NCBI GenBank assembly: GCA_013115145.1 | Contig: JAAPAO010000114.1 | Span: 1 to 64,000, forward strand | DNA length: 64,000 nt | Direction of reading: 5' to 3' | DNA from: Perkinsus chesapeaki ATCC PRA-425 | Taxonomy: Eukaryota > Protista > Perkinsozoa | Shown: positions 11,690-23,135 of the stretch, piece after piece | Layout: every line of letters begins with the position of its first letter | Position numbering within the stretch: the first letter of the stretch is position 1 | Notes under the pieces: model-generated | The model's input: only the letters and a program-made list of their open reading frames with translations | Databases searched by the model: none | What the model was told of the DNA's origin: nothing | Translations under genes and position numbers: made by a program

Positions 11690-13076
11690 GTATGACAATT
11701 TTCAACACCAGCTGCTGCTGCTTTCGATGCGTTGGCGCTTCGGGAATGCGGCGATCAGTTTTGGATCAGTTGATTCACATGAGTAGCCTAGAATCTTTGG
11801 GACCCCATTCGGCCTTGCATCTCATCGTTCTCGAGTTCCTGCACCCGATAGAGGTAAACGCTTCAGGTTACCCGATTAGTTTGAACGGGAAGGATGATAA
11901 TTATCGTGTGATCTTTAGTCTAGGCAAAAAACCTCAGTTGTGGTTATACGGTAATATAATCGCGACTTGAAGCTCTTGTGAAGTTCTCCTGTAGTCTATT
12001 GGTAAACTAATGGTATGTCTGTTATACAGTTGGTCGGTCTACAGATTGTATAGCAATAAGTTGCTTCCAAATAGTGAAGAATGATGATGACTTCATTAAA
12101 TGTATAAGTTTCACAAAAGCCAAGTCGGTTTTCACTTCACTGCCACTTTCTCAAGATACTACTTGTGCGGTCACATCTTTATTATCTCTCTGCGTTTGTC
12201 AGTAACTACTTCCAAGTTCGGATGATAGGTGGTTTCTACTAGCCTCTACATTACCGCACTCCGGCCATCCGTGGGATAGTACATGGCAGTCGGTCTGTGA
12301 CATAGCAAAACTCCAATGGTCCCGTTGAGCTTTCTGACAAACAGTAGAGCTTGTAGATCCCATACAAACTTTCCTGTATGACAAAATGAGTAAATTCTTC
12401 TAGAATATGGTTCTCATTAACATTGCAATCCCGCAGACGATTGTAGTAGTGCAACAATCCTCAGGCTGTCCCTCTAGCATTCACATCTATCGCTTTGTTG
12501 GCAGCTGTCACGGAAGCCATCGAAACAGCGATCGGTAAATAGTTAGGGGGTAGTCATTGTGACAGTATCTCTGCTGTCAGATACGCCAGAGTCGCGAGGA
12601 GCGTACTCGGTTGCGCAGTTATCAATGCGCCTGAGTGAATCATTCCCGACTTGGTTTCTGCAGAAAGCGCGGAGCTTCCGTTTGGAGAGATTTCATAATT
12701 ACCTTATTGGTAGCTTATCGTTCATGGTTTATTATTATTAAGCTAGGATAATCTGAAAACCGCGCCAAACTCTTTCTTCGGACAGAAGGAGCCGCGCGAT
12801 GAGCCTTGGCTTTGTTAAAAACGTAACAATTGTGTCATCCGTGCATCGACCAGCTCGGGTTCGCTATTCACTATAAGTAGCGAACCCAAGCTCGCTACTT
12901 ACAGTAGTCACCCTCGCCTGTTGATACGCTGGCACCTTTTCGGAATCCTACCGCTGATAATTTGCGCCTAATCGCTAATCTTGAGTCACCAGGCCGTTCG
13001 GAAGTCATCGGGGTGCAATGCTGTGCCGATACACAGTATCGAGATAACACTGTCTCACTGTTATCGCGGCTAATGG

Positions 13077-14825
13077 TTGATGCTGTCAGCCACATGGAGG
13101 CTTCTCACACTGCCTGCTTTGCCTCTCGCACTTGCGCACCTTCGGCCCCGCCTTCTCCCATGTTTGCGGGTAGATACTTTCGGTGTAATCGCTGCAGGAG
13201 GCTCCCACTCGGCGGTGCTCAGTGGATGGCCAGGGAAGCTCTACACATTCGGCGGTAACAACCTCGGGCAACTTGGCTCGGCCGGGCCTTCTCCCCGACA
13301 AGTTATTGCTGTTTCTTGTGGGTGAGTACCAGTACCCTCGCCAAATGGGAGTATTCTGCTAAGATACGGTCAAACCATTGCACTGCTTAATGACGGTGCA
13401 GTTTACGCATGCGGACAGACGCCTTCAGCAGGCTCATCTTCATTTGCTGTTGAAGATCCAACCACATGGTAGGGTCGGGACTCGAACTTGAGCGTGTAGG
13501 CTCCGGAATTGTCCCTCGGGCTCTGCCCCAGTGGGACTGTCTGCATCACTGTGCACGCCCTGGGGGCTTTTATAAGATTTTGTTGTCCTAGTCAACTTCC
13601 TAGTGGACAAAAACTGCATATTGAAGGGTACCCAAGAAGATATCGGTTGAAATACGACTACTTACACTACCTCGTTCGTAACTCTGTCGAGAGCTTACTT
13701 GGAGCTCTCCAGCGATGCCTTTGACCAATTCAATCATGGTTTAACTCGCCGAGTAAGTGCGAAGGTTCACGTGGCTATAAAGTTCTTCTTGAAGGCATTT
13801 ATATAATGATACGTTTCGATACTGCCGCTGCTGCTGATTTACTGACGAAAACCATCTTGAACGCTTTCTGTGAGACCCAAGTTCGGTTAATACGAAAAAA
13901 AAGCAAAACCGATGTTGGTGGTATGCCGTATGCGTGATTGTGTCAGGTATCATCGACTAAACCAGTTTTCGAAGGTTGGTCTGAAATTTAAGGTAGCTCT
14001 GGTATCTGCCGGGCTGGACTTCACACTTCTCGCTACCACTGCTGGTAAAGTGTTTGGTCAAGGCTCCAATCCTTTCGGCGCCTTAGGCCTCGGTGAGCTA
14101 TCAGCTACCTGTTGCTCAAAGCCAGTTTCACAGGCACGATAGTGTCAACCAATCAACCCGTTACCGAGTGGACGCCAGTAGTCCTTCCGAAGAATGTCAT
14201 TGCGATCAACCTGGCAGCTGGGTGTTTCCATAGCGCCATAGTCGACCATCGCGGTTGGCTTTGGGTTGCTGGTAGCGATCTTCATGGTCGGTTGGGCATT
14301 GAACGAGATCCATCATTTGAGTACGAGAAAGTTGCATTTTACCGGAGAATCTTCGACCTTCCTGCCATTTCTGCAGTAGCTCTTGGAAGTAGCCATTCTA
14401 TGGCACTGAGCCAAGATGGCGACGTTTGGGGGTGGGGATCGAACGAGCGCGGCCAGCTGGGGCTGGGTTATGGTGGTGAGAACATACGCCCTGTCCGGTT
14501 ACCCATAAAGAATGCAGTTAGAATCAGTGCCGGTAGAACTCACTCGGCTTACGTCGACCGAGCTGGTTGCCTTTGGACTTGCGGCGACAACAGGAAAGAA
14601 CAGTGCGGGTGGGGTTTTGATGGGATGGATACGATTTGCAAATTTGCTTTAATATATTCATCCATAGTTTCGGTTGCTTGTGGATGGAGTCACACCATAG
14701 CTTTGCGTACCGATGGCGTTGTGCTAGCTTGTGGCAACCACGAGGACGATCGATTAGGTGTGGACGGCATGATTGCATTTGAATCCATGATGACTGAAAC
14801 ACGTTACACATTCAGTTCTGAGTGA
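13077..14825 (+). CDS. RCC1/BLIP-II repeat protein (multi-exon, 5' end uncertain)
   Basis: Multiple RCC1 repeats: IAAGGSHSAVL..GKLYTFGGNNLGQLG, VALGSSHSMALSQDGDVWGWGSNERGQLGLG, ISAGRTHSAYV..GCLWTCGDN, VACGWSHTIALRTDGVVLACG. Confidence 0.85.
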
Positions 14826-14935
14826 TGTCGGATGAATTGTGTTACACAGTGGGCCAGTAATCACTTGAATCAATAAAGAACAGAGCTTCATAATAAGTCA
14901 TTTACAACTGCAATCAAATCGCTAAATTCAATCAA

Positions 14936-15147
14936 ATGTGAAGGGCAACATGTTGCGCGCAATGTAAAATAGCAAACGGCGAAGGAGTCTTCATGTGGTG
15001 TGCACGCCGCAAGGTTGTTCAATCACACAAACTGCGCATACGAATCTGTACAATGCGACGGTAGTTGTGTTTGGATAGATGCGTCGCATGTCGATCACAG
15101 TTGTCAGAATTGTTGATTTGCGCCCCACAACTTCCCATTTCGCTTAA
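14936..15147 (+). repeat. Split direct repeat A1
   Basis: 212 bp, identical to 20698-20909 except at 15053 (a/g) and 15108 (a/c). Its last base is the A of the gag ATG. Confidence 0.97.
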
Positions 15148-16310
15148 TGGCAGCAGCTCCCGTCATCAACTTGTCCCCTGGCTTGAAGGAGATTCTTCGC
15201 AAATACTGCGAGGATGAGAATCTGCTTTCCCTTGCGTGTGCAGTTCTACAAGAAGAGCAAGTGGTGCAGGTGCTATCTTTCTCCACCCTTTCGGACGCGG
15301 ACGTGAGCTCGATTCGGAAGAAGATCATCGCTAAGGACGATTCGTTCAAGGGTAAAGAGATTCTGATCAATACCTGCTTGAAGTCAGCGGTGCGTGACGC
15401 TAATTTCCAAGCGGACCTTGCTCAAGCTACTGACAAGATCGTTGCGCAGAAGGACGCTTCCTCGAATCAGAGGGCTGCAGCGGTGTCGAAGATGCATGAG
15501 AGAATAGAGGCCCTCAAGAAGGCGATGGGGGTGAAAGACATGAGGGCCAATATCCTACCTCCTATTTCGGTGTGGAGAAAGCTATTGGTGGCTCTTCCTA
15601 CCTATGTGGACTTCAACACCGACTTGCGTAACACTGATTATGCTGGCTCTATATTACCGGTACACGCCGACCCAGTGGGTATCTTTCTCCAGGCTTCAGA
15701 CGACCAGCTGCCGACGGTGGTTCAACAGGTTGTTCCGAAGGACATCGCCGACAGGCGCAGCCGAGAGATGAGCGGGACCGCTTGGGCGGCCTGCTTTATA
15801 AGGTACTCCACCGCCCTTCTCCTAGCCGACATCGAGCAGGGCGAGGGAGCTAAGCTTTCGGCAAACATTGACGTGTTCACCTTATGGTCGTATATGATGA
15901 GTGTCAATGTGCTAGCGGCGAAGTATGGTTGGTCTCTCGCCTACGACGTCGACTGCGCGTTCAGAAGACTCGTTGAGGCTCGTTGCTTGGAGGGAGCCGT
16001 GCCTTTACGTGAGGCCATCTCCGACACTGCTAGTTTTGCCCAAATCACTGTGGACAAGACTCTCTACGGGCGTCATCCCTCTCATGCCCCGGCTAAGTCG
16101 GGCGCGGATGCGAAAGGAGAGTCTGCCACGCACTCGAAGAAGGATAGCAAGTCCGGTGCCAAGCGCTCCAGAGCTAACAGATCGTCTGGTAAGCTTTGTT
16201 ACGAGTTTCTGGCGACCGGCTCGTGCAAGAGGCCTAATTGTCACTTTCGTCACGAGGATGCTGCTGGTACTCCTGCCGAGAAGAGACCGAAGGCTGGCCC
16301 CAAGAAGTGA
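15147..16310 (+). CDS. gag: Retroelement ORF1, Gag-like, with C-terminal CCCH zinc finger
   Basis: 387 aa ORF directly after repeat A1. A basic tail ends in C-x8-C-x4-C-x3-H (CYEFLATGSCKRPNCHFRH). Confidence 0.85.
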   Translation: MAAAPVINLSPGLKEILRKYCEDENLLSLACAVLQEEQVVQVLSFSTLSDADVSSIRKKIIAKDDSFKGKEILINTCLKSAVRDANFQADLAQATDKIVAQKDASSNQRAAAVSKMHERIEALKKAMGVKDMRANILPPISVWRKLLVALPTYVDFNTDLRNTDYAGSILPVHADPVGIFLQASDDQLPTVVQQVVPKDIADRRSREMSGTAWAACFIRYSTALLLADIEQGEGAKLSANIDVFTLWSYMMSVNVLAAKYGWSLAYDVDCAFRRLVEARCLEGAVPLREAISDTASFAQITVDKTLYGRHPSHAPAKSGADAKGESATHSKKDSKSGAKRSRANRSSGKLCYEFLATGSCKRPNCHFRHEDAAGTPAEKRPKAGPKK

Positions 16311-16983
16311 GACCTGGGAATCGGAGTGGCCATCGTCCGACGAGGGAAGTAGTCTCTGTCATGCCCTTGTCAGCGTTTGTGTCTGTGTGGCTGTCATGAG
16401 AACAACCTTATTTACTACTGAGAGTTCGTCTTGTTGCGTTGTTACCCGGTGTAGTGGTCAGCATCGGCGCCGTGCCGTGGATCCTACCAGACCGGGTGGC
16501 TCTCCGCGTGCATCGGCGAAAGGCCTGATGACGCTTTCATAGAGAGTACAGGCATCGAGTGGAGGCCATCCGATAAGAAATGTCGGGCTGTGCCCTACTG
16601 CTGCCACGAGTTCGCCCCTGCAGCAACAAGGCTGTCACGCGATTTCTCGATTTGCGCTTCGGACTGAGGAGACAGTGCCGTTGCGTATTCGGAACGGAGA
16701 CCAGGAGAGCGGCCGATAGGCGCTCTTGGCCAATGGGCGACGAGCCCGATGTGCGAGCCCAACGGGTCGGTGGTTTCCGCAGGATAACCTTAGGGATCAG
16801 GAACATGGCTGATCTAATGCATGCGACGCCGAGTGGCGCACAGGTTCCGAGGCTGCCAGTGGCAGCCTGCCACGCGGGACCGCGTTCTACTTCTTGGCGG
16901 CGTGATGACGTCGCACGTTAGCGTACATTGACTACTAAAGTTTCTCTCGGGTTTCTCTCGGTGGATTCCTCCCATGGCCGTGA

Positions 16984-19167
16984 GAGGATTTTGTCTGCCT
17001 CAGGTTCATTCCTGACCGGCTCGATACCCGCGACGTTTGGCCTCATGTAAGTGCCCTGGTAGCCGATGCATTAGCTCGGGCTGAGGAGGAATGGCAAAAG
17101 GAGTCATCCGACCTCACTGACGGCACCGGGATTTTCGGCTCTCTGGACACGAACTTCTACGCGCCGTCTTCCCCGCTTCTGGAAAGGTTAGCGCGGACTC
17201 TGGACCTAGAGGTCGAAGAACTGTTAAGCTCAGAGACCGGCGAGGCTCTAGCTTCATGGCTCAACCTAAGCCGCCAGCAACAGTCCACGTCGTCGGCATG
17301 GTCAGACCATCTCCCAGTCTTGTCGGCCTGTGCTGATAGAATCCGAATTGAGTGGGCAAGGCTTCTTGAGGTGAATCCGCGCCCCGCTGAGTGCGGTAGT
17401 CCGGTACGGCCACTCCTAATGCAAGCCATCATCGCGGAGCTGGGAAATGCAGTTGGCGACGGTTGCAACTTCGATCTCCACTTTCTAGACTTGGTTGATA
17501 AAGGTTTACCGCTCGGTACATCCGGGGAGGTCCCGAGGAGTGGCGTGTGGCCCGCGCGGGAGTACGATGTGAGGGATCGGTTTTTCCCCATCTCGAAAGA
17601 TTTATGGAGAGAGAACTACCGTTCTACTGCGGATTACGAGACCGAAGTCCAAGCGGCTATCTCGAAGGAGATAGCTCTCGGGCGCATGTCGGTGGTGGAA
17701 CCCAACGAGATTCATAAGATCAAGGCCATCACCCGCCTCGGCTGTGTTCCCAGCTTTGACGCTGAGGGTAACGTCAAAAAAATACGAGTGGTCGATGACC
17801 TAACCGAATCGGGCTGCAATACGTTGATTCGGAGCAACGTCTCCGAAACGATATTATTGCCGAATATCTCCGCCGCGTGCCGAATTGCAGTGATGTGCAA
17901 GGTCGCGGACGTAGGGGGAGCCGATCCGCTTTATTGGGTTGAGAGTGACGTCAAGTCGGCGTTTAGGCAATTGAGGCTGTCTGACGTCGACTCGTGGTTT
18001 TGCTGCAATCGTGTAGGCGAGAGAATCGTGAGGCATTTGGCCTTGCCCTTTGGGGCGGTATCCAGTCCCCTACTTTTCTGTCGTCTCTCGGGATTGGACT
18101 CGATCATCGCGACTGTTATGCTGTGTCTGTGTAGCCTATTCCACAGGCTCGTAACGTACATTGATGATAGAGGGATCCCAGTGAAACTACGTTTCGCCCT
18201 GAAAGTCGCGTTAGTTTCAGTTCTGGTTGATCTTATCTGCGGGATTGAGCCGGCCTTCGAGAAACTGTTTGTGTCTCAGCAACCTCATTGTTTGGGGTTT
18301 GTCCTGAACCTAGTGGAGATGACTCTCACTTTATCCGCTGAAAAGCTTCAGGTGTTCACAGCGAGTCTCGGGGGAGTATCTAATCAGGGTGACTCGGTGG
18401 CTGTGAAGGACCTTGAAAAACTAGTTGGTCGCTTGGCCTGGGTTTCGGTTCCGTTCAAGAAATTACGGCCCTTCCTAATGCCATTCTATGCCTCTCTTCA
18501 TATCGGTAAATCTAAGTCACTCCGCTCGATTAAAGTGGGAAAGGCTCTAGCTTCTGCGGCCACATTTCTGAGACGGTTTTTCCAAACCGAAGCTGCTATA
18601 CCTATGCACAGTCTCCTACCGGATATGGGAGATATGCATCGGACTGTGCTAGTGAGTGACGCCTGTACTAAGAAAATTGGAGGATATGTATTACACCAGT
18701 TTGGAGAATCTGGTAATCGCATATTGTGGTACCAGGCTGATGTGACAGATCGAGAGCTTTCGGCATTACTAGATAAGCTACTCGAGAGGGAGAATGCGTC
18801 TTCGGCTATTGGCAGCCCTGAGATGTGTCTTTTGGAACTATTAGCCCTAGTGGTCGGCGCTGCTCAAGCTCCTCGGTCAAATCTGGTTGTTGCCGTGACA
18901 GACAATGAAGCGTGCTCACACGTTATCAAGTCGATGCGTAGCAGGTCGACGGCTCTCAGCAAGTTGATGCAATCGCTTATGGTTATACGTCCACACTTAG
19001 CTGGGCGTAATTTGACGGCAGTCCATGTCGCCGGTGAGAAAAATGTACTTGCAGACTGGATATCTCGTTCCACGGCGAGCGAGGTGAGACATAGAATGGC
19101 CGGCGTACAAGATTGCGAGGAAGTGGACATCCGTGCGACGCTCCATGAATTTAACGAGTCTCTTTGA
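16984..19167 (+). CDS. pol: Retroelement ORF2, reverse transcriptase + RNase H (frame open from 16984, first ATG at 17419)
   Basis: RT motifs ESDVKSAFRQL, LPFGAVSSPLLF, YIDD, CLGFVLN. RNase H motifs VLVSDAC, LLELLAL, VTDNEA, HVAGEKNVLADWISR, typical of DIRS-order RH. Confidence 0.95.
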   Translation, partial: EDFVCLRFIPDRLDTRDVWPHVSALVADALARAEEEWQKESSDLTDGTGIFGSLDTNFYAPSSPLLERLARTLDLEVEELLSSETGEALASWLNLSRQQQSTSSAWSDHLPVLSACADRIRIEWARLLEVNPRPAECGSPVRPLLMQAIIAELGNAVGDGCNFDLHFLDLVDKGLPLGTSGEVPRSGVWPAREYDVRDRFFPISKDLWRENYRSTADYETEVQAAISKEIALGRMSVVEPNEIHKIKAITRLGCVPSFDAEGNVKKIRVVDDLTESGCNTLIRSNVSETILLPNISAACRIAVMCKVADVGGADPLYWVESDVKSAFRQLRLSDVDSWFCCNRVGERIVRHLALPFGAVSSPLLFCRLSGLDSIIATVMLCLCSLFHRLVTYIDDRGIPVKLRFALKVALVSVLVDLICGIEPAFEKLFVSQQPHCLGFVLNLVEMTLTLSAEKLQVFTASLGGVSNQGDSVAVKDLEKLVGRLAWVSVPFKKLRPFLMPFYASLHIGKSKSLRSIKVGKALASAATFLRRFFQTEAAIPMHSLLPDMGDMHRTVLVSDACTKKIGGYVLHQFGESGNRILWYQADVTDRELSALLDKLLERENASSAIGSPEMCLLELLALVVGAAQAPRSNLVVAVTDNEACSHVIKSMRSRSTALSKLMQSLMVIRPHLAGRNLTAVHVAGEKNVLADWISRSTASEVRHRMAGVQDCEEVDIRATLHEFNESL

Positions 19168-19293
19168 GGAACGTGTTCCTATAACGCGACTATCAATCGA
19201 GATAAGATGTGTATTTTGTTTCAACGACTGCCATCAGGATGTTGCGCCTATTAGACTCATTAATTAAACGGCACAGTTCTTGCTTTGTTCCTC

Positions 19294-20517
19294 ATGTTCG
19301 TCCCTCTCCCAAACTGTCAAAGCGAGCTGCGCAAGAGGAAATCGGCGGCTCCTGCCCAGACTATGCCAACGGTATGTGCTAGGATCCAAAACCGGCTTGA
19401 TGGATTCTCCTCACGTGAAGAGCGGATCCTTAGTTCGACGTCGATATCGTCCAACAGGCGGAAGAAGACTCGAGGTTCGGCAAAGCGTGCGGCGGAAGCT
19501 TCGCGCTCCGTGACCGAGGCCGACGTCGAAGCTGTGGTGCAAGCTGCGAGAGCGGACGGTACAAAAAGGTCGTATAGCTGCATGATCAATCGTTATCTCG
19601 ATATCATGAAGGCAACTGATAAGGATCCATATCCTTTGACTATCGAAAAGCTCTTGCATTTTGTGGTATGCTTGATTCGAGGTAATTACACATTCGAAAG
19701 CGTGTCTCGCTACTCGAGGACAGTTAAACTTATAGCGAGACAGGAGAGAGGCGAGGTGCTAGACAAACTATCCGAAGAACGCTATAGGTTGGCTCTAAAG
19801 GGCGCGTCGAAACTATGCGTGCAGTCGGGCCTCGAGGAACAGAGTCGATCCCCCACTTTCACTCGAGAGGAGGTTGTCTCCATCTCGTCTGTTTCTTCGC
19901 CTGGGAGCGAAATAATCGTATGTGGCTTCATACTCGGCATATGTTGCCTTTTGAGGCTCGGCGAGTTGTTGGAGCTTACCGCTGACAACGTTGAGTTCGA
20001 GAACGACCTAGCGGCCGGTAGAGTTTTTGTGAAAAGGGGCAAAACCGACCAAGCTGGGGTCGGCGCTAGCATCTACTTCGGTTGTGTGTGTGACGGCGAC
20101 CGACCGAATTTGAGCTGCCCAGTTCACCGCTTACACACCTGGATGACTAATTCCGGTGTAAAGGACAGTAGCTCAATACTCTTTCCGATATCTAGAGCAG
20201 ATTTCATCGTAGGATTGGAGCAGGTGGCTGCGGTGACTCTCGGGGTACCACGTGTAGGCATGTCTTACACAGGCCACTCGCTACGGCGAAGCGCTGCACA
20301 GATCCTCTTCCATAGCGGGGTCAGCATCGAGCACATTGTTGAAATGGGACGATGGCGGTCGGCCAAGTCCTTAACTGCCGCCTATTTGAGAGGGGGCGTG
20401 TATCAGAGGAAGCGCCAAACCTCGTTCACGAAGATACTGATGCGTGACGAGGCAGTACCTTCTTTCTCGGGGAGTTCGGGAGAGTATGGGAGGAGCCTGG
20501 ATTCTCACACCAGTTGA
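19294..20517 (+). CDS. Retroelement ORF3, tyrosine recombinase
   Basis: Catalytic set: LLRLGELL (R), KRGKTDQ (K), GHSLRRSAA (HxxR), MGRWRS (W), AAYL (Y). The stop lies inside repeat B1. Confidence 0.95.
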   Translation: MFVPLPNCQSELRKRKSAAPAQTMPTVCARIQNRLDGFSSREERILSSTSISSNRRKKTRGSAKRAAEASRSVTEADVEAVVQAARADGTKRSYSCMINRYLDIMKATDKDPYPLTIEKLLHFVVCLIRGNYTFESVSRYSRTVKLIARQERGEVLDKLSEERYRLALKGASKLCVQSGLEEQSRSPTFTREEVVSISSVSSPGSEIIVCGFILGICCLLRLGELLELTADNVEFENDLAAGRVFVKRGKTDQAGVGASIYFGCVCDGDRPNLSCPVHRLHTWMTNSGVKDSSSILFPISRADFIVGLEQVAAVTLGVPRVGMSYTGHSLRRSAAQILFHSGVSIEHIVEMGRWRSAKSLTAAYLRGGVYQRKRQTSFTKILMRDEAVPSFSGSSGEYGRSLDSHTS

Positions 20518-20700
20518 CGCTAAGCAGGTAGGCTTACCGACTCTGCTCGCGGCCACTTTCTCGTAAAGAGGTGTCCGTGCCTTTCCGGCTCTTTGCAGAT
20601 GCTCTGGTGTAGAGCACCCAGCCTCGTGATTGGTGTTTGTGGTGTTAGGCACAAACACACATCACCTCTCCCAAACTCCCGAGCGGTTCGCGGTTTTATG
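20487..20700 (+). repeat. Split direct repeat B1
   Basis: 214 bp identical to 20927-21140. Confidence 0.97.
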
Positions 20701-20909
20701 TGAAGGGCAACATGTTGCGCGCAATGTAAAATAGCAAACGGCGAAGGAGTCTTCATGTGGTGTGCACGCCGCAAGGTTGTTCAATCACACAAACTGCGCA
20801 TACGAATCTGTACAGTGCGACGGTAGTTGTGTTTGGATAGATGCGTCGCATGTCGATCACAGTTGTCAGCATTGTTGATTTGCGCCCCACAACTTCCCAT
20901 TTCGCTTAA
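20698..20909 (+). repeat. Split direct repeat A2
   Basis: Copy of 14936-15147 with 2 mismatches. Overlaps B1 by the trinucleotide ATG. Confidence 0.97.
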
Positions 20910-20926
20910 CCCACCCACTTCCGCCC

Positions 20927-21140
20927 TGGGAGGAGCCTGGATTCTCACACCAGTTGACGCTAAGCAGGTAGGCTTACCGACTCTGCTCGCGGCCACTTTC
21001 TCGTAAAGAGGTGTCCGTGCCTTTCCGGCTCTTTGCAGATGCTCTGGTGTAGAGCACCCAGCCTCGTGATTGGTGTTTGTGGTGTTAGGCACAAACACAC
21101 ATCACCTCTCCCAAACTCCCGAGCGGTTCGCGGTTTTATG
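20927..21140 (+). repeat. Split direct repeat B2 (element right end)
   Basis: Identical to B1. Ends ...cggttttATG, then unrelated host sequence agctagtc. Confidence 0.97.
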
Positions 21141-21859
21141 AGCTAGTCAAACTACGGACAGAGTTATGAGTAGAACCTTCAATTAATACGTTAAACCAAC
21201 ACTGACAGTGTTACACTGTTAGTCGGTTGTTCGACAAACGAGATAGACGCGGTAGATCTTCGTGTCACGTGACAGTCGCATTCTGGCAATTTCTTCGGGT
21301 ATCATAGAGGCACCCCTGTGGCGGAGCGTATCAAGCTATTATAGCACAGCAGCTGTCCCCTCAGCGTCTAAATACACAAAGGTATTATTTAACGCGTGTA
21401 ACGCCAATTTCTTAGCAATCCGACGACCCACCATCCGAATAGATTTTCGTCAAGTCATAGTTCTAGCACAACCTAGTTCCTAGCTTACCAGGGCTGTGAG
21501 ATACTCTTCATACTTTATTGTACTTTACAACTGGTTCTGCTTCATCCCGGAATCCCACGGCACGTGGGGTGCGGGAGCTTAATCAACTGAATACAACACG
21601 TGAATCTGCCGCCGTCTTATTACCATCTTCCCTCTCTCTGCGCCTTTCCTGCCCTAGCGCCTGGGACACTTCGGTCGCCCTGACTGACACAATCCTTCTT
21701 GCGCTTCCCAGTTGTACTGCACAACACTTCGCGTTCTTTCATACTCGATACCAAGCTCTTGGTCGTTGAGATCCGAGGAGCCCCCGAAATCTCCAAAGCT
21801 CGCAGCACACTCAATCGTGTGGCATTACCCTTCTCATTCAGTTCTTTGTTGACGGGTGT

Positions 21860-23135
21860 ATGTCAGCTCTGGGAGTTGTGAAGACTTGCCGAGACGAGGT
21901 ACGATCGCTGCTCGTCGCTGGTTATTCACATACTTTCTTTCCAGATTCCTAAAGGCCCAACAGGAGGCATGTGGCGTAGAGCTCTCTATGACCTTATCGA
22001 CCACCCAGGAAAATATGCGAGTAGCATTTTCCACAAGTCAAAGGAGGGCTTCACCACTGTGTACGACGGCTTTCCTAAATCAACTGTACATCTCCTCGTG
22101 CTGCCGGATAGAACTTTGAAGGGCCCTCAGCAGCTTACCAAGTGAGCGGTGGGGAGGCAATAAGCGTCAACCTTCTCTTGCTTGAACTGTAAACTTGACC
22201 TCGAATGTCGTGTACAATTTTGATTCGTATTAGATGTCAAAAATATGTCATCGATCAGTCGGTCCAATTTCCGGGGAAGACTTCTGTGGAAGGCCTGGTC
22301 CTTGAGTTGACATCATATTTTGGGAGCGTGCATGTTCTGACTGTTTCAGTTCTTGATTCGGAGCGAGCGCTGTCACATGAAAGTTAATATCAGTATTATG
22401 GGAAAGGGGTTCTCACCGAACTTCCTGAAGTCCTAAATTATTCTCGTTACTAACGAGTCGTTACCTAAACACATATGGCGCTCTCTTCTCAATGATGAAA
22501 TTAATGCTTAAAAATGTAGAGGTATTTTAATTCTATAAGAGGGTCTCTGAGGGAGCCTTGAGGGGTATTAATCAGTCACACCCATGTGGAAGTGTTATCA
22601 AACTGCCCTGCTCTTCAGAGATGGTGAATTCGGTATTCCATTTTTACGCCGACTTCATGGGTATTGTGATTGGCTGGTCAATGAGCTCCAGAAGCAAGAA
22701 CATATCGGTAAACTCGGGTTCAAATGTGGCATTCATGCGGTGCCGAGCTTGGAGCCTTTCCACGTACATATTATATCCGGCGACATGAAGAGTGATCGCA
22801 TAAAACATAAGAAGCATTGGAACTCTTTCACGACACCTTTCTTTGTGGAGCTTAATGAGGTGGAAAGTATCCTGCAGATTGAAGGTGGGCTGAACTCATT
22901 CCTTATTCGACCAATCAGCTTCGTTTCAGGTAGTCTGCGATCGATTCTGGCACGCGAGTCTCACTTAAAAGACGATTTGGTGTGCAACATTTGTGGCGAG
23001 AATTTCGGTCGATTCTTGAAGTTCAAAGAACACAGAGTTTCCTGTCGGAAAACAAAGTCATCAGCGGCTGGCCAAGTAGCTGTCAGCCAAAATGAAATTG
23101 AGCTGCCGCAAACAAAAAGGCAACGATTATGTTGA
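21860..23135 (+). CDS. APTX: Aprataxin (HIT domain + C2H2-like zinc finger), multi-exon
   Basis: Exons give MSALGVVKTCRDE|IPKGPTGGMWRRALYDLIDHP...VYDGFPKSTVHLLVLP, then GIHAVPSLEPFHVHIISGD..S..IKHKKHWNSFTTPFF and LVCNICGENF...KEH. Confidence 0.9.

Follow-up and report, generated by a model that had tools for sequence, protein, structure and literature searches.

The window analyzed here, a 64,000-nt stretch of Perkinsus chesapeaki ATCC PRA-425 (contig JAAPAO010000114.1, positions 1 to 64,000, assembly GCA_013115145.1), contains at positions 14936 to 21140 what we read, with a probability of about 0.88, as an intact and young member of a hitherto undescribed Ngaro-like family of tyrosine recombinase (YR) retrotransposons (order DIRS) in the nuclear genome of this species. 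The original prediction had described a complete split-direct-repeat YR retrotransposon with these boundaries and an A1...B1-A2-B2 repeat layout. A repeat search of window positions 13500 to 22500 returned exactly two families of direct repeats, A and B, which the raw sequence arranges as A1...B1-A2-(17 nt)-B2; the predicted ends and layout were thus exact to the base, and the encoded reverse transcriptase/RNase H (RT/RH) and YR bear out the predicted class. Feature coordinates are collected in Table 1.

Of the 212 bases of A, 2 (positions 15053 and 15108) differ between the two copies, and none of the 214 bases of B does, for a total of 2 differences in 426 bases (99.5% identity), in line with the young insertion that had been proposed. 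B1 and A2 overlap by three bases, ATG, and their junction is a copy of the join between the right and left ends of the element. As A1 stops on the A of the ORF1 start codon, it is presumed to hold the promoter and 5′ leader. A 12-nt perfect palindrome, GCAACATGTTGC, lies 9 nt inside the A repeat (14945 to 14956 in A1 and 20707 to 20718 in A2), and an imperfect inverted match of 44 nt (70%) pairs the end of B with the start of A. It is speculation that these sequences could be binding sites for the recombinase. The repeat search revealed no long inverted terminal repeats (ITRs) and no internal complementary region in the element, the G+C content of which (0.50 to 0.57) is above that of its surroundings (0.44 to 0.47).

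Coding capacity and classification

Three open reading frames (ORFs), in the order ORF1 (Gag-like), ORF2 (RT/RH), and ORF3 (YR), are intact, and the same gene order was found in all genomic copies examined. The predicted RT-RNaseH and YR genes were confirmed together with their catalytic motifs (YIDD, D-E-D-D, and R-K-HxxR-W-Y), and the predicted gag corresponds to the Gag-like ORF1. In an alignment of 14 ORF2 paralogues, the motif A aspartate, LPFG, Y392-x-D394-D395 (YIDD here), and the RNase H residues D559-E618-D640-D691 are invariant. The Pfam model RVT_1 matched ORF2 below its cutoff (E = 0.0035), and dinoflagellate DIRS-type RTs, including those of Symbiodinium, are likewise barely detected by this model (De Mendoza et al., PMC5890265). 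When compared with solved structures, a profile built from the RT/RH paralogues matched the Ty3 RT (1.2e-13) and a caulimovirus polyprotein (2.2e-12). ORF3 has all of the YR catalytic residues (R224, K253, H331-x-x-R334, W357, and Y367 in the 410-aa numbering from 19285), which are invariant in an alignment of 11 paralogues. It was matched by Pfam Phage_integrase (E = 9.8e-8), and its family profile matched the solved structure of Cre recombinase across both domains (3.6e-17). Pfam searches found no Dam-type methyltransferase, protease, or DDE integrase in any ORF.

ORF1 had no Pfam match beyond a weak one to zf-CCCH, a family that exceeds the Pfam cutoffs in relatives. The corresponding C-terminal CCCH finger is kept in 8 of the 11 paralogous ORF1s of the P. 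chesapeaki genome, and the motif occurs in 12 of the 150 best database relatives. No CCHC motif was present in ORF1, where the CCCH finger takes its place. The label "Gag-like" follows from the position of ORF1 and from this putative nucleic acid-binding finger.

The combination of RT/RH and YR without a DDE integrase or protease, integrated without a target site duplication, places the element in the order DIRS. Within this order, published work (PMC6681497, PMC3783388, and PMC7192593) distinguishes DIRS-like elements (inverted repeats, an internal complementary region, and a methyltransferase), PAT-like elements (split direct repeats and a methyltransferase), Ngaro-like elements (split direct repeats without a methyltransferase), and the VIPER-like elements of kinetoplastids. 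Here, A1-(ORFs)-B1-A2-B2 split direct repeats accompany a Pol without a Dam-like methyltransferase, a structure that points to the Ngaro-like group. VIPER-like elements have the split direct repeat layout in common with the window element, but the host here is an alveolate.

Ngaro, PAT, TOC1, and kangaroo had all been named in the original prediction as possible subgroups. Among these, the missing methyltransferase and the gag / RT-RH / YR order point to a Ngaro-like element and away from a PAT/TOC/kangaroo-like one. That the element is PAT-like (TOC/kangaroo) or DIRS1-like after all is very unlikely. Both groups combine RT/RNase H with a YR, the PAT-like group shares the split direct repeats, and RT/RH trees of the order DIRS are poorly resolved (PMC6681497). 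However, PAT-like (PAT, TOC3, and kangaroo) and DIRS1-like elements encode a Dam-like adenine methyltransferase, for which the window element has no space: the RNase H extends to the end of ORF2 in the alignment and ends ∼100 nt ahead of the opening of the ORF3 frame. DIRS1-like elements further have ITRs as well as an internally located complementary region, in place of which the window element has only its 44-nt, 70% inverted match. The gene order gag / RT-RH / YR also argues against both groups.

Compared with the Ngaro elements of Cafeteria burkhardae (Ngaro1-4; PMC8547959) and fungi (PMC3783388), the window element has the same A1-(ORFs)-B1A2B2 structure and size (∼6 kb), the same Gag-like / RT-RNase H / YR order without a methyltransferase, solo A-B remnants, and a higher G+C content than its surroundings. 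It differs from them in three respects: its Gag-like protein ends in a CCCH (C3H1) finger, whereas a CCHC box is reported for some YR elements (PMC6681497); its ORF1 and ORF2 are split by a predicted stop-containing intron instead of overlapping or abutting; and its RT/RH is at most 28% identical to anything beyond P. chesapeaki.

Table 1. Features of the retrotransposon, in window coordinates
Feature	Positions	Strand	Description
Whole element	14936-21140	+	6,205 bp; delimited by repeat boundaries
Repeat A1	14936-15147	+	212 bp; terminal base is the A of the ORF1 ATG
ORF1	15147-16310	+	387 aa; Gag-like; intact
CCCH zinc finger, ORF1 C-terminal	16197-16253	+	C-x8-C-x4-C-x3-H
Predicted spliceosomal intron	16307-17002	+	696 nt; canonical GT-AG; contains the ORF1 stop
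ORF2	17003-19167	+	RT/RNase H; frame open from 16984, 727 codons
RT motifs A to C	17941-18174	+	YIDD at 18157-18168
RNase H D-E-D-D residues	18652-19068	+	
ORF3	19285/19294-20517	+	Cre-like tyrosine recombinase; 410/407 aa, 407 counted from the ATG at 19294
Repeat B1	20487-20700	+	214 bp; begins 28 nt ahead of the ORF3 stop codon; abuts A2
Repeat A2	20698-20909	+	212 bp; 99% identity with A1
Spacer A2-B2	20910-20926	+	17 nt; unique; also found in solo A-B copies
Repeat B2	20927-21140	+	214 bp; 100% identity with B1; right end of the element

Predicted intron between ORF1 and ORF2

From the sequence, we consider it probable that ORF1 and ORF2 are joined by an intron, such that unspliced RNA would encode Gag, spliced RNA would encode Gag-Pol, and only the unspliced form would be copied. 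The donor site (GAA/GTGAGA) carries the TGA stop codon of ORF1 as its bases 2 to 4, and the acceptor at 17002 consists of a pyrimidine tract followed by CAG. Removal of the predicted intron joins ORF1 in frame to ORF2, which would give a fusion protein of ∼120 kDa with ...GPKK/FIPD... at the joint. The GenBank model of ORF1-ORF2, KAF4672273.1 (FOL47_000717), splices ORF1 codon 387 to position 17003, which is exactly the predicted junction; the YR has a model on the same contig. The ORF1 stop and the opening of the ORF2 frame are 673 nt apart, and this gap holds five to eight stops in each frame, so neither frameshifting nor readthrough can connect the two ORFs. The first ATG of ORF2 is codon 146 (17419), with none among the 145 codons before it, yet tblastx similarity to four paralogues starts at 17011, only 9 nt past the acceptor.

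Similar sites recur in paralogues with only 21 to 25% Pol identity. Seven of 11 have a GT[AG][AG][AG] donor no more than 20 nt upstream of the ORF1 stop (background frequency, 0.13; binomial P = 1.2e-4), and most of these also have in-frame acceptors with a pyrimidine tract 20 to 45 nt into the ORF2 frame. Besides the window element, 6 of the 10 other P. chesapeaki paralogues have an in-frame splice junction, and the implied intron lengths across elements are 61, 123, 134, 142, 153, 270, and 696 nt. At the equivalent position, GenBank models of two Perkinsus olseni elements have GT-AG introns of 236 and 51 nt. In the former, the TAA stop of ORF1 lies within the donor GTAAGC; the latter ends in TAG, which would be an in-frame stop if the first base of this intron opens a codon.

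According to this proposal, unspliced RNA would encode only the CCCH finger Gag-like protein, and splicing out of the intron, with the ORF1 stop inside it, would yield a fusion of Gag with RT/RH. The ratio of Gag to Pol would then be set by how efficiently the RNA is spliced and not by frameshifting. Because the genomic copies retain the intron, reverse transcription would have to use the unspliced RNA as its template.

ORF2 might instead be expressed from a pol mRNA of its own, with a spliced leader added in trans at the 17002 acceptor; by internal or non-AUG initiation; or by a start at the codon 146 ATG. Perkinsus mRNAs can carry a spliced leader (PMC2868825), and the lack of a clear donor/acceptor pair in some paralogues would suit expression without cis-splicing. 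We nevertheless regard these routes as unlikely, though not negligibly so. Trans-splicing would not require the donor-like sites that are enriched just upstream of the ORF1 stop. The in-frame junctions found here and in other paralogues also weigh against these routes, as does the intron modeled in the same place in two P. olseni elements. A start at codon 146 would lose an N-terminal region that is conserved among paralogues.

Returning to the stop-containing intron, three points count against it: 4 of the 11 paralogues have no convincing donor/acceptor pair, the prediction draws on DNA sequence and gene models, and the GenBank models may be ab initio predictions, all from one annotation project. 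The wider proposal, that the whole superfamily of Perkinsus Ngaro-like elements might choose between Gag and Gag-Pol through a conserved stop-containing intron, with the unspliced RNA serving as both genome and Gag mRNA and with a Gag that has a CCCH RNA-binding finger, seems to us evenly balanced.

Our literature search, which did not reach key Ngaro reviews, found no description of introns in Ngaro or DIRS elements, and an earlier description is possible. The only splicing-based control of Gag and Pol in the literature searched works in the opposite direction, in the copia-type elements BARE (Ty1/copia; PMC3735527) and EVD of Arabidopsis (PMC5580714). As a functional analogy only, alternative splicing sets the Gag:Pol ratio in BARE and EVD, and the unspliced RNA is the replication template. 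However, splicing in these elements removes pol for extra Gag, whereas here, in another class of element, it would remove the gag stop to give Gag-Pol. If confirmed, the intron would be a simple, testable case of a retroelement that uses host splicing instead of frameshifting, and it would explain why gene finders fuse the ORFs into host-like "C3H1-type domain-containing" proteins in GenBank and UniProt.

Gag-Pol fusions from P. chesapeaki and P. olseni (e.g., KAF4650709.1, KAF4650786.1, and KAF4672273.1) have been deposited as hypothetical host proteins under the names "C3H1-type domain-containing protein" or "Reverse transcriptase domain-containing protein," inflating the apparent gene sets. 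A subthreshold Rfam match to the drz-agam-1 ribozyme lies on the minus strand at 16968 to 16999, at the 3′ end of the predicted intron (25 bits versus a gathering score of 37; E = 0.12), and is probably due to chance.

Genomic copies, ends, and integration

The assembly of the polyploid P. chesapeaki genome (41.7 Mb in 3,544 contigs) is fragmented and breaks at copies of the element. Besides the single full-length copy, the assembly contains two solo A-17nt-B copies (contigs C2240 and C3440; 97 to 98% identity), two contigs whose ends lie 73 nt inside identical A copies, and a decayed copy on contig C2862 (∼70% identity). The left flanks of the two contig-end copies differ, and these copies therefore represent at least two further insertions. 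The solo copies show earlier insertions that were later removed by recombination, as they are the expected products of recombination between A1 and A2; "solo AB repeats" have also been described for the Ngaros of Cafeteria (PMC8547959). Together with the exact junction sequences, they provide markers for insertion polymorphism between strains. The solo copy at C2240:17369-18158 has a 345-nt insertion inside A. In addition, a 73-nt internal piece of B (C847:1669-1741) is 100% identical and is surrounded by unrelated DNA on both sides; as its length equals that of the two contig-end matches, it may be an artifact of the assembly graph.

More distant relatives are abundant. When the genome was searched at the protein level, 76 matches to RT/RH and 75 to YR were obtained (22 to 44% identity), and many of these relatives have intact ORFs (∼720 to 750 aa and 350 to 430 aa), often on their own 5-kb contigs. 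One relative on contig C3492 (40% identical) has the same A1...B1-A2-B2 order, with A1 at 12324 to 12589 and B1, A2, and B2 at 18617 to 19277. In this element (C3492:12256-19305), the 28 nt that open its own A are repeated, inverted and without mismatch, directly after B2, and an inverted stretch resembling A is located just upstream of A1. These inverted A pieces may result from self-targeting into the A palindrome or may be footprints of recombination. The first ∼52 nt of the C3492 A repeat occur at at least 15 other loci (85 to 94% identity).

At all five left junctions (the window, C3046, C1341, C2240, and C2850), the flank ends in AA and is followed by the start of A; four of these junctions have ATGTGAAGG and one has GTGTGAAGG. 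On the right, all three junctions have GGTTTTA at their end, and the next bases are TG in the window copy and AC or CT in the others. Apart from overlaps of 1 to 3 nt, no target site duplication was found at the window copy, the two solo copies, or the two contig-end copies. In the window copy, ATG is present at both ends and at the B1/A2 joint. This arrangement fits the idea, quoted in PMC7192593, of an exchange between the target and a short trinucleotide located at the circle junction. In elements from P. olseni, Symbiodinium, and a European Nucleotide Archive (ENA) contig, B ends and A starts with an overlap of 0 to 3 nt as well, but the sequences differ; no recombination site conserved across families was found in the B-end and A-start sequences.

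By analogy with the Goodwin-Poulter model (PMC6681497 and PMC7192593), the window element may replicate through an RNA that extends from the start of A1 to the end of B2 and is reverse transcribed, with the internal B1/A2 junction serving as the template that restores and joins both ends. The YR would then recombine this junction with the target through a 1- to 3-nt crossover, here ATG, and the circle would be integrated. The circular intermediate had been stated as known in the original prediction. It is a published model and not a demonstrated fact: for DIRS-1, linear single-stranded cDNA has been found, and the circle junction could not be amplified (PMC7192593).

Several observations weigh against our reading of the element as a young, mobile Ngaro-like retrotransposon. 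The assembly holds only one full-length copy, and the 500-nt flanks each matched only themselves, leaving no empty allele in the assembly; for these reasons, recent mobility is inferred only from the identity of the repeats. The trinucleotide crossover rule is only partly obeyed, as unrelated bases and not ATG come after the terminal TTTTA of the two solo copies; only the A is constant in them, so the rule is loose. The Ngaro-like assignment is by structural criteria, and a capsid fold was not recovered for ORF1 (mean pLDDT of 54 with AlphaFold; no Foldseek match in the PDB at E ≤ 0.001).

The single assembled copy might suggest an inactive relic, or genes that now serve the host and are no longer mobile. 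We consider this improbable, as none of the three ORFs or catalytic residues is disrupted, the repeats are nearly identical, at least two further insertion sites have identical A starts, and intact ORFs are also found in dozens of other families of this genome.

Relatives outside P. chesapeaki and setting of the element

The RT/RH profile was searched against 1.84 billion representatives and matched 43,133 proteins at E ≤ 0.001, of which 1,577 reached E ≤ 1e-30. Among 20 of the matches that were looked up, 13 could be named: 6 from P. chesapeaki, 5 from P. olseni, 1 from Perkinsus marinus, and 1 from Symbiodinium sp. CCMP2592. The best non-self matches to ORF2 are 35 to 38% identical and all come from P. 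chesapeaki, whereas the P. olseni and P. marinus proteins reach at most 28%. In word-index protein searches, which would readily detect relatives with 50 to 90% identity, ORF2 had no match, ORF3 matched only itself, and the RT/RH alignment retrieved only the model of the window element and three weak matches. Given the 43,133 profile matches, we take this outcome to mean that close relatives, not relatives in general, are absent.

At the sequence level, the family is therefore new and undescribed, its nearest RT/RH sequences being only 35 to 38% identical, and no published characterization of Perkinsus elements was found in the literature searched. The expected Perkinsus-like host was correct, as the window's own gene model (KAF4672273.1) is from P. 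chesapeaki, and the proposed uncharacterized family likewise holds up. The novelty stops at the family, because this kind of element has already been reported in alveolates: P. marinus is among the species with DIRS1-like sequences in GenBank (Piednoel et al., PMC3266345), and Symbiodinium has A-coding-B-A-B elements with a YR, including SymbioDIRS (De Mendoza et al., PMC5890265).

The window element resembles these Symbiodinium DIRS-type elements, which include SymbioDIRS-Dnmt3, in its alveolate (myzozoan) host and in its repeats. Moreover, the Symbiodinium protein CAE7032378.1 ranks within the best 150 matches to the Perkinsus RT/RH profile and comes from a locus with the same order of repeats. 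In contrast to the window element, the Symbiodinium elements are described as intronless, and some have a cytosine methyltransferase in Pol or a shuffled YR/Pol order (PMC5890265); the window element has no counterpart of the DNMT of SymbioDIRS-Dnmt3. The one Symbiodinium locus examined has no detectable YR, whereas the YR in the window is intact.

The A1...B1-A2-B2 order also occurs in a P. olseni element (L063), the Symbiodinium locus (L061), and an ENA contig (L060). Misassembly had been named as the outcome that would undo the structure, and it can be ruled out for practical purposes. The assembly is indeed fragmented and broken at copies of the element, but the chance that B1-A2-B2 is an artifact of an ordinary long terminal repeat (LTR)-like element is close to nil: the same order recurs in C3492, P. 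olseni, Symbiodinium, and the ENA contig, which we count as independent assemblies; the solo copies keep the A-17nt-B joint; and the DDE integrase and protease are absent.

The ENA and Symbiodinium elements measure 7.3 kb (L060:3816-11163; ERZ26962017) and 12.3 kb (L061:575-12862; Symbiodinium sp. CCMP2592, GCA_905221615.1), and their RT/RH sequences match the Perkinsus profile at 1e-72 to 1e-76. No YR was found at either locus by Pfam, the YR profile, or hhalign; the sole hint of one comes from L060, in which an upstream ORF of 558 aa has a weak box-I-like motif.

Perkinsus species parasitize bivalves of commercial importance, and the repeats in Perkinsus genomes remain largely unannotated. 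The window copy provides an intact, fully delimited reference for an abundant, undescribed group of Perkinsus mobile elements. It also adds Perkinsozoa to the hosts of the well-documented Ngaro-type elements and connects these with the divergent DIRS-type elements of dinoflagellates.

The element is intergenic, with an RCC1-repeat gene on one side and an aprataxin-like (DcpS_C / zf-C2HE) gene on the other, on the same strand. Rfam and tRNA scans found no tRNA in the element and its flanks, and no hammerhead was found in the repeats. Just 3′ of the element, window positions 21559 to 21637 hold a dispersed repeat of ∼79 nt, which is not a tRNA according to ARAGORN and has copies on at least six other contigs (79 to 94% identity).

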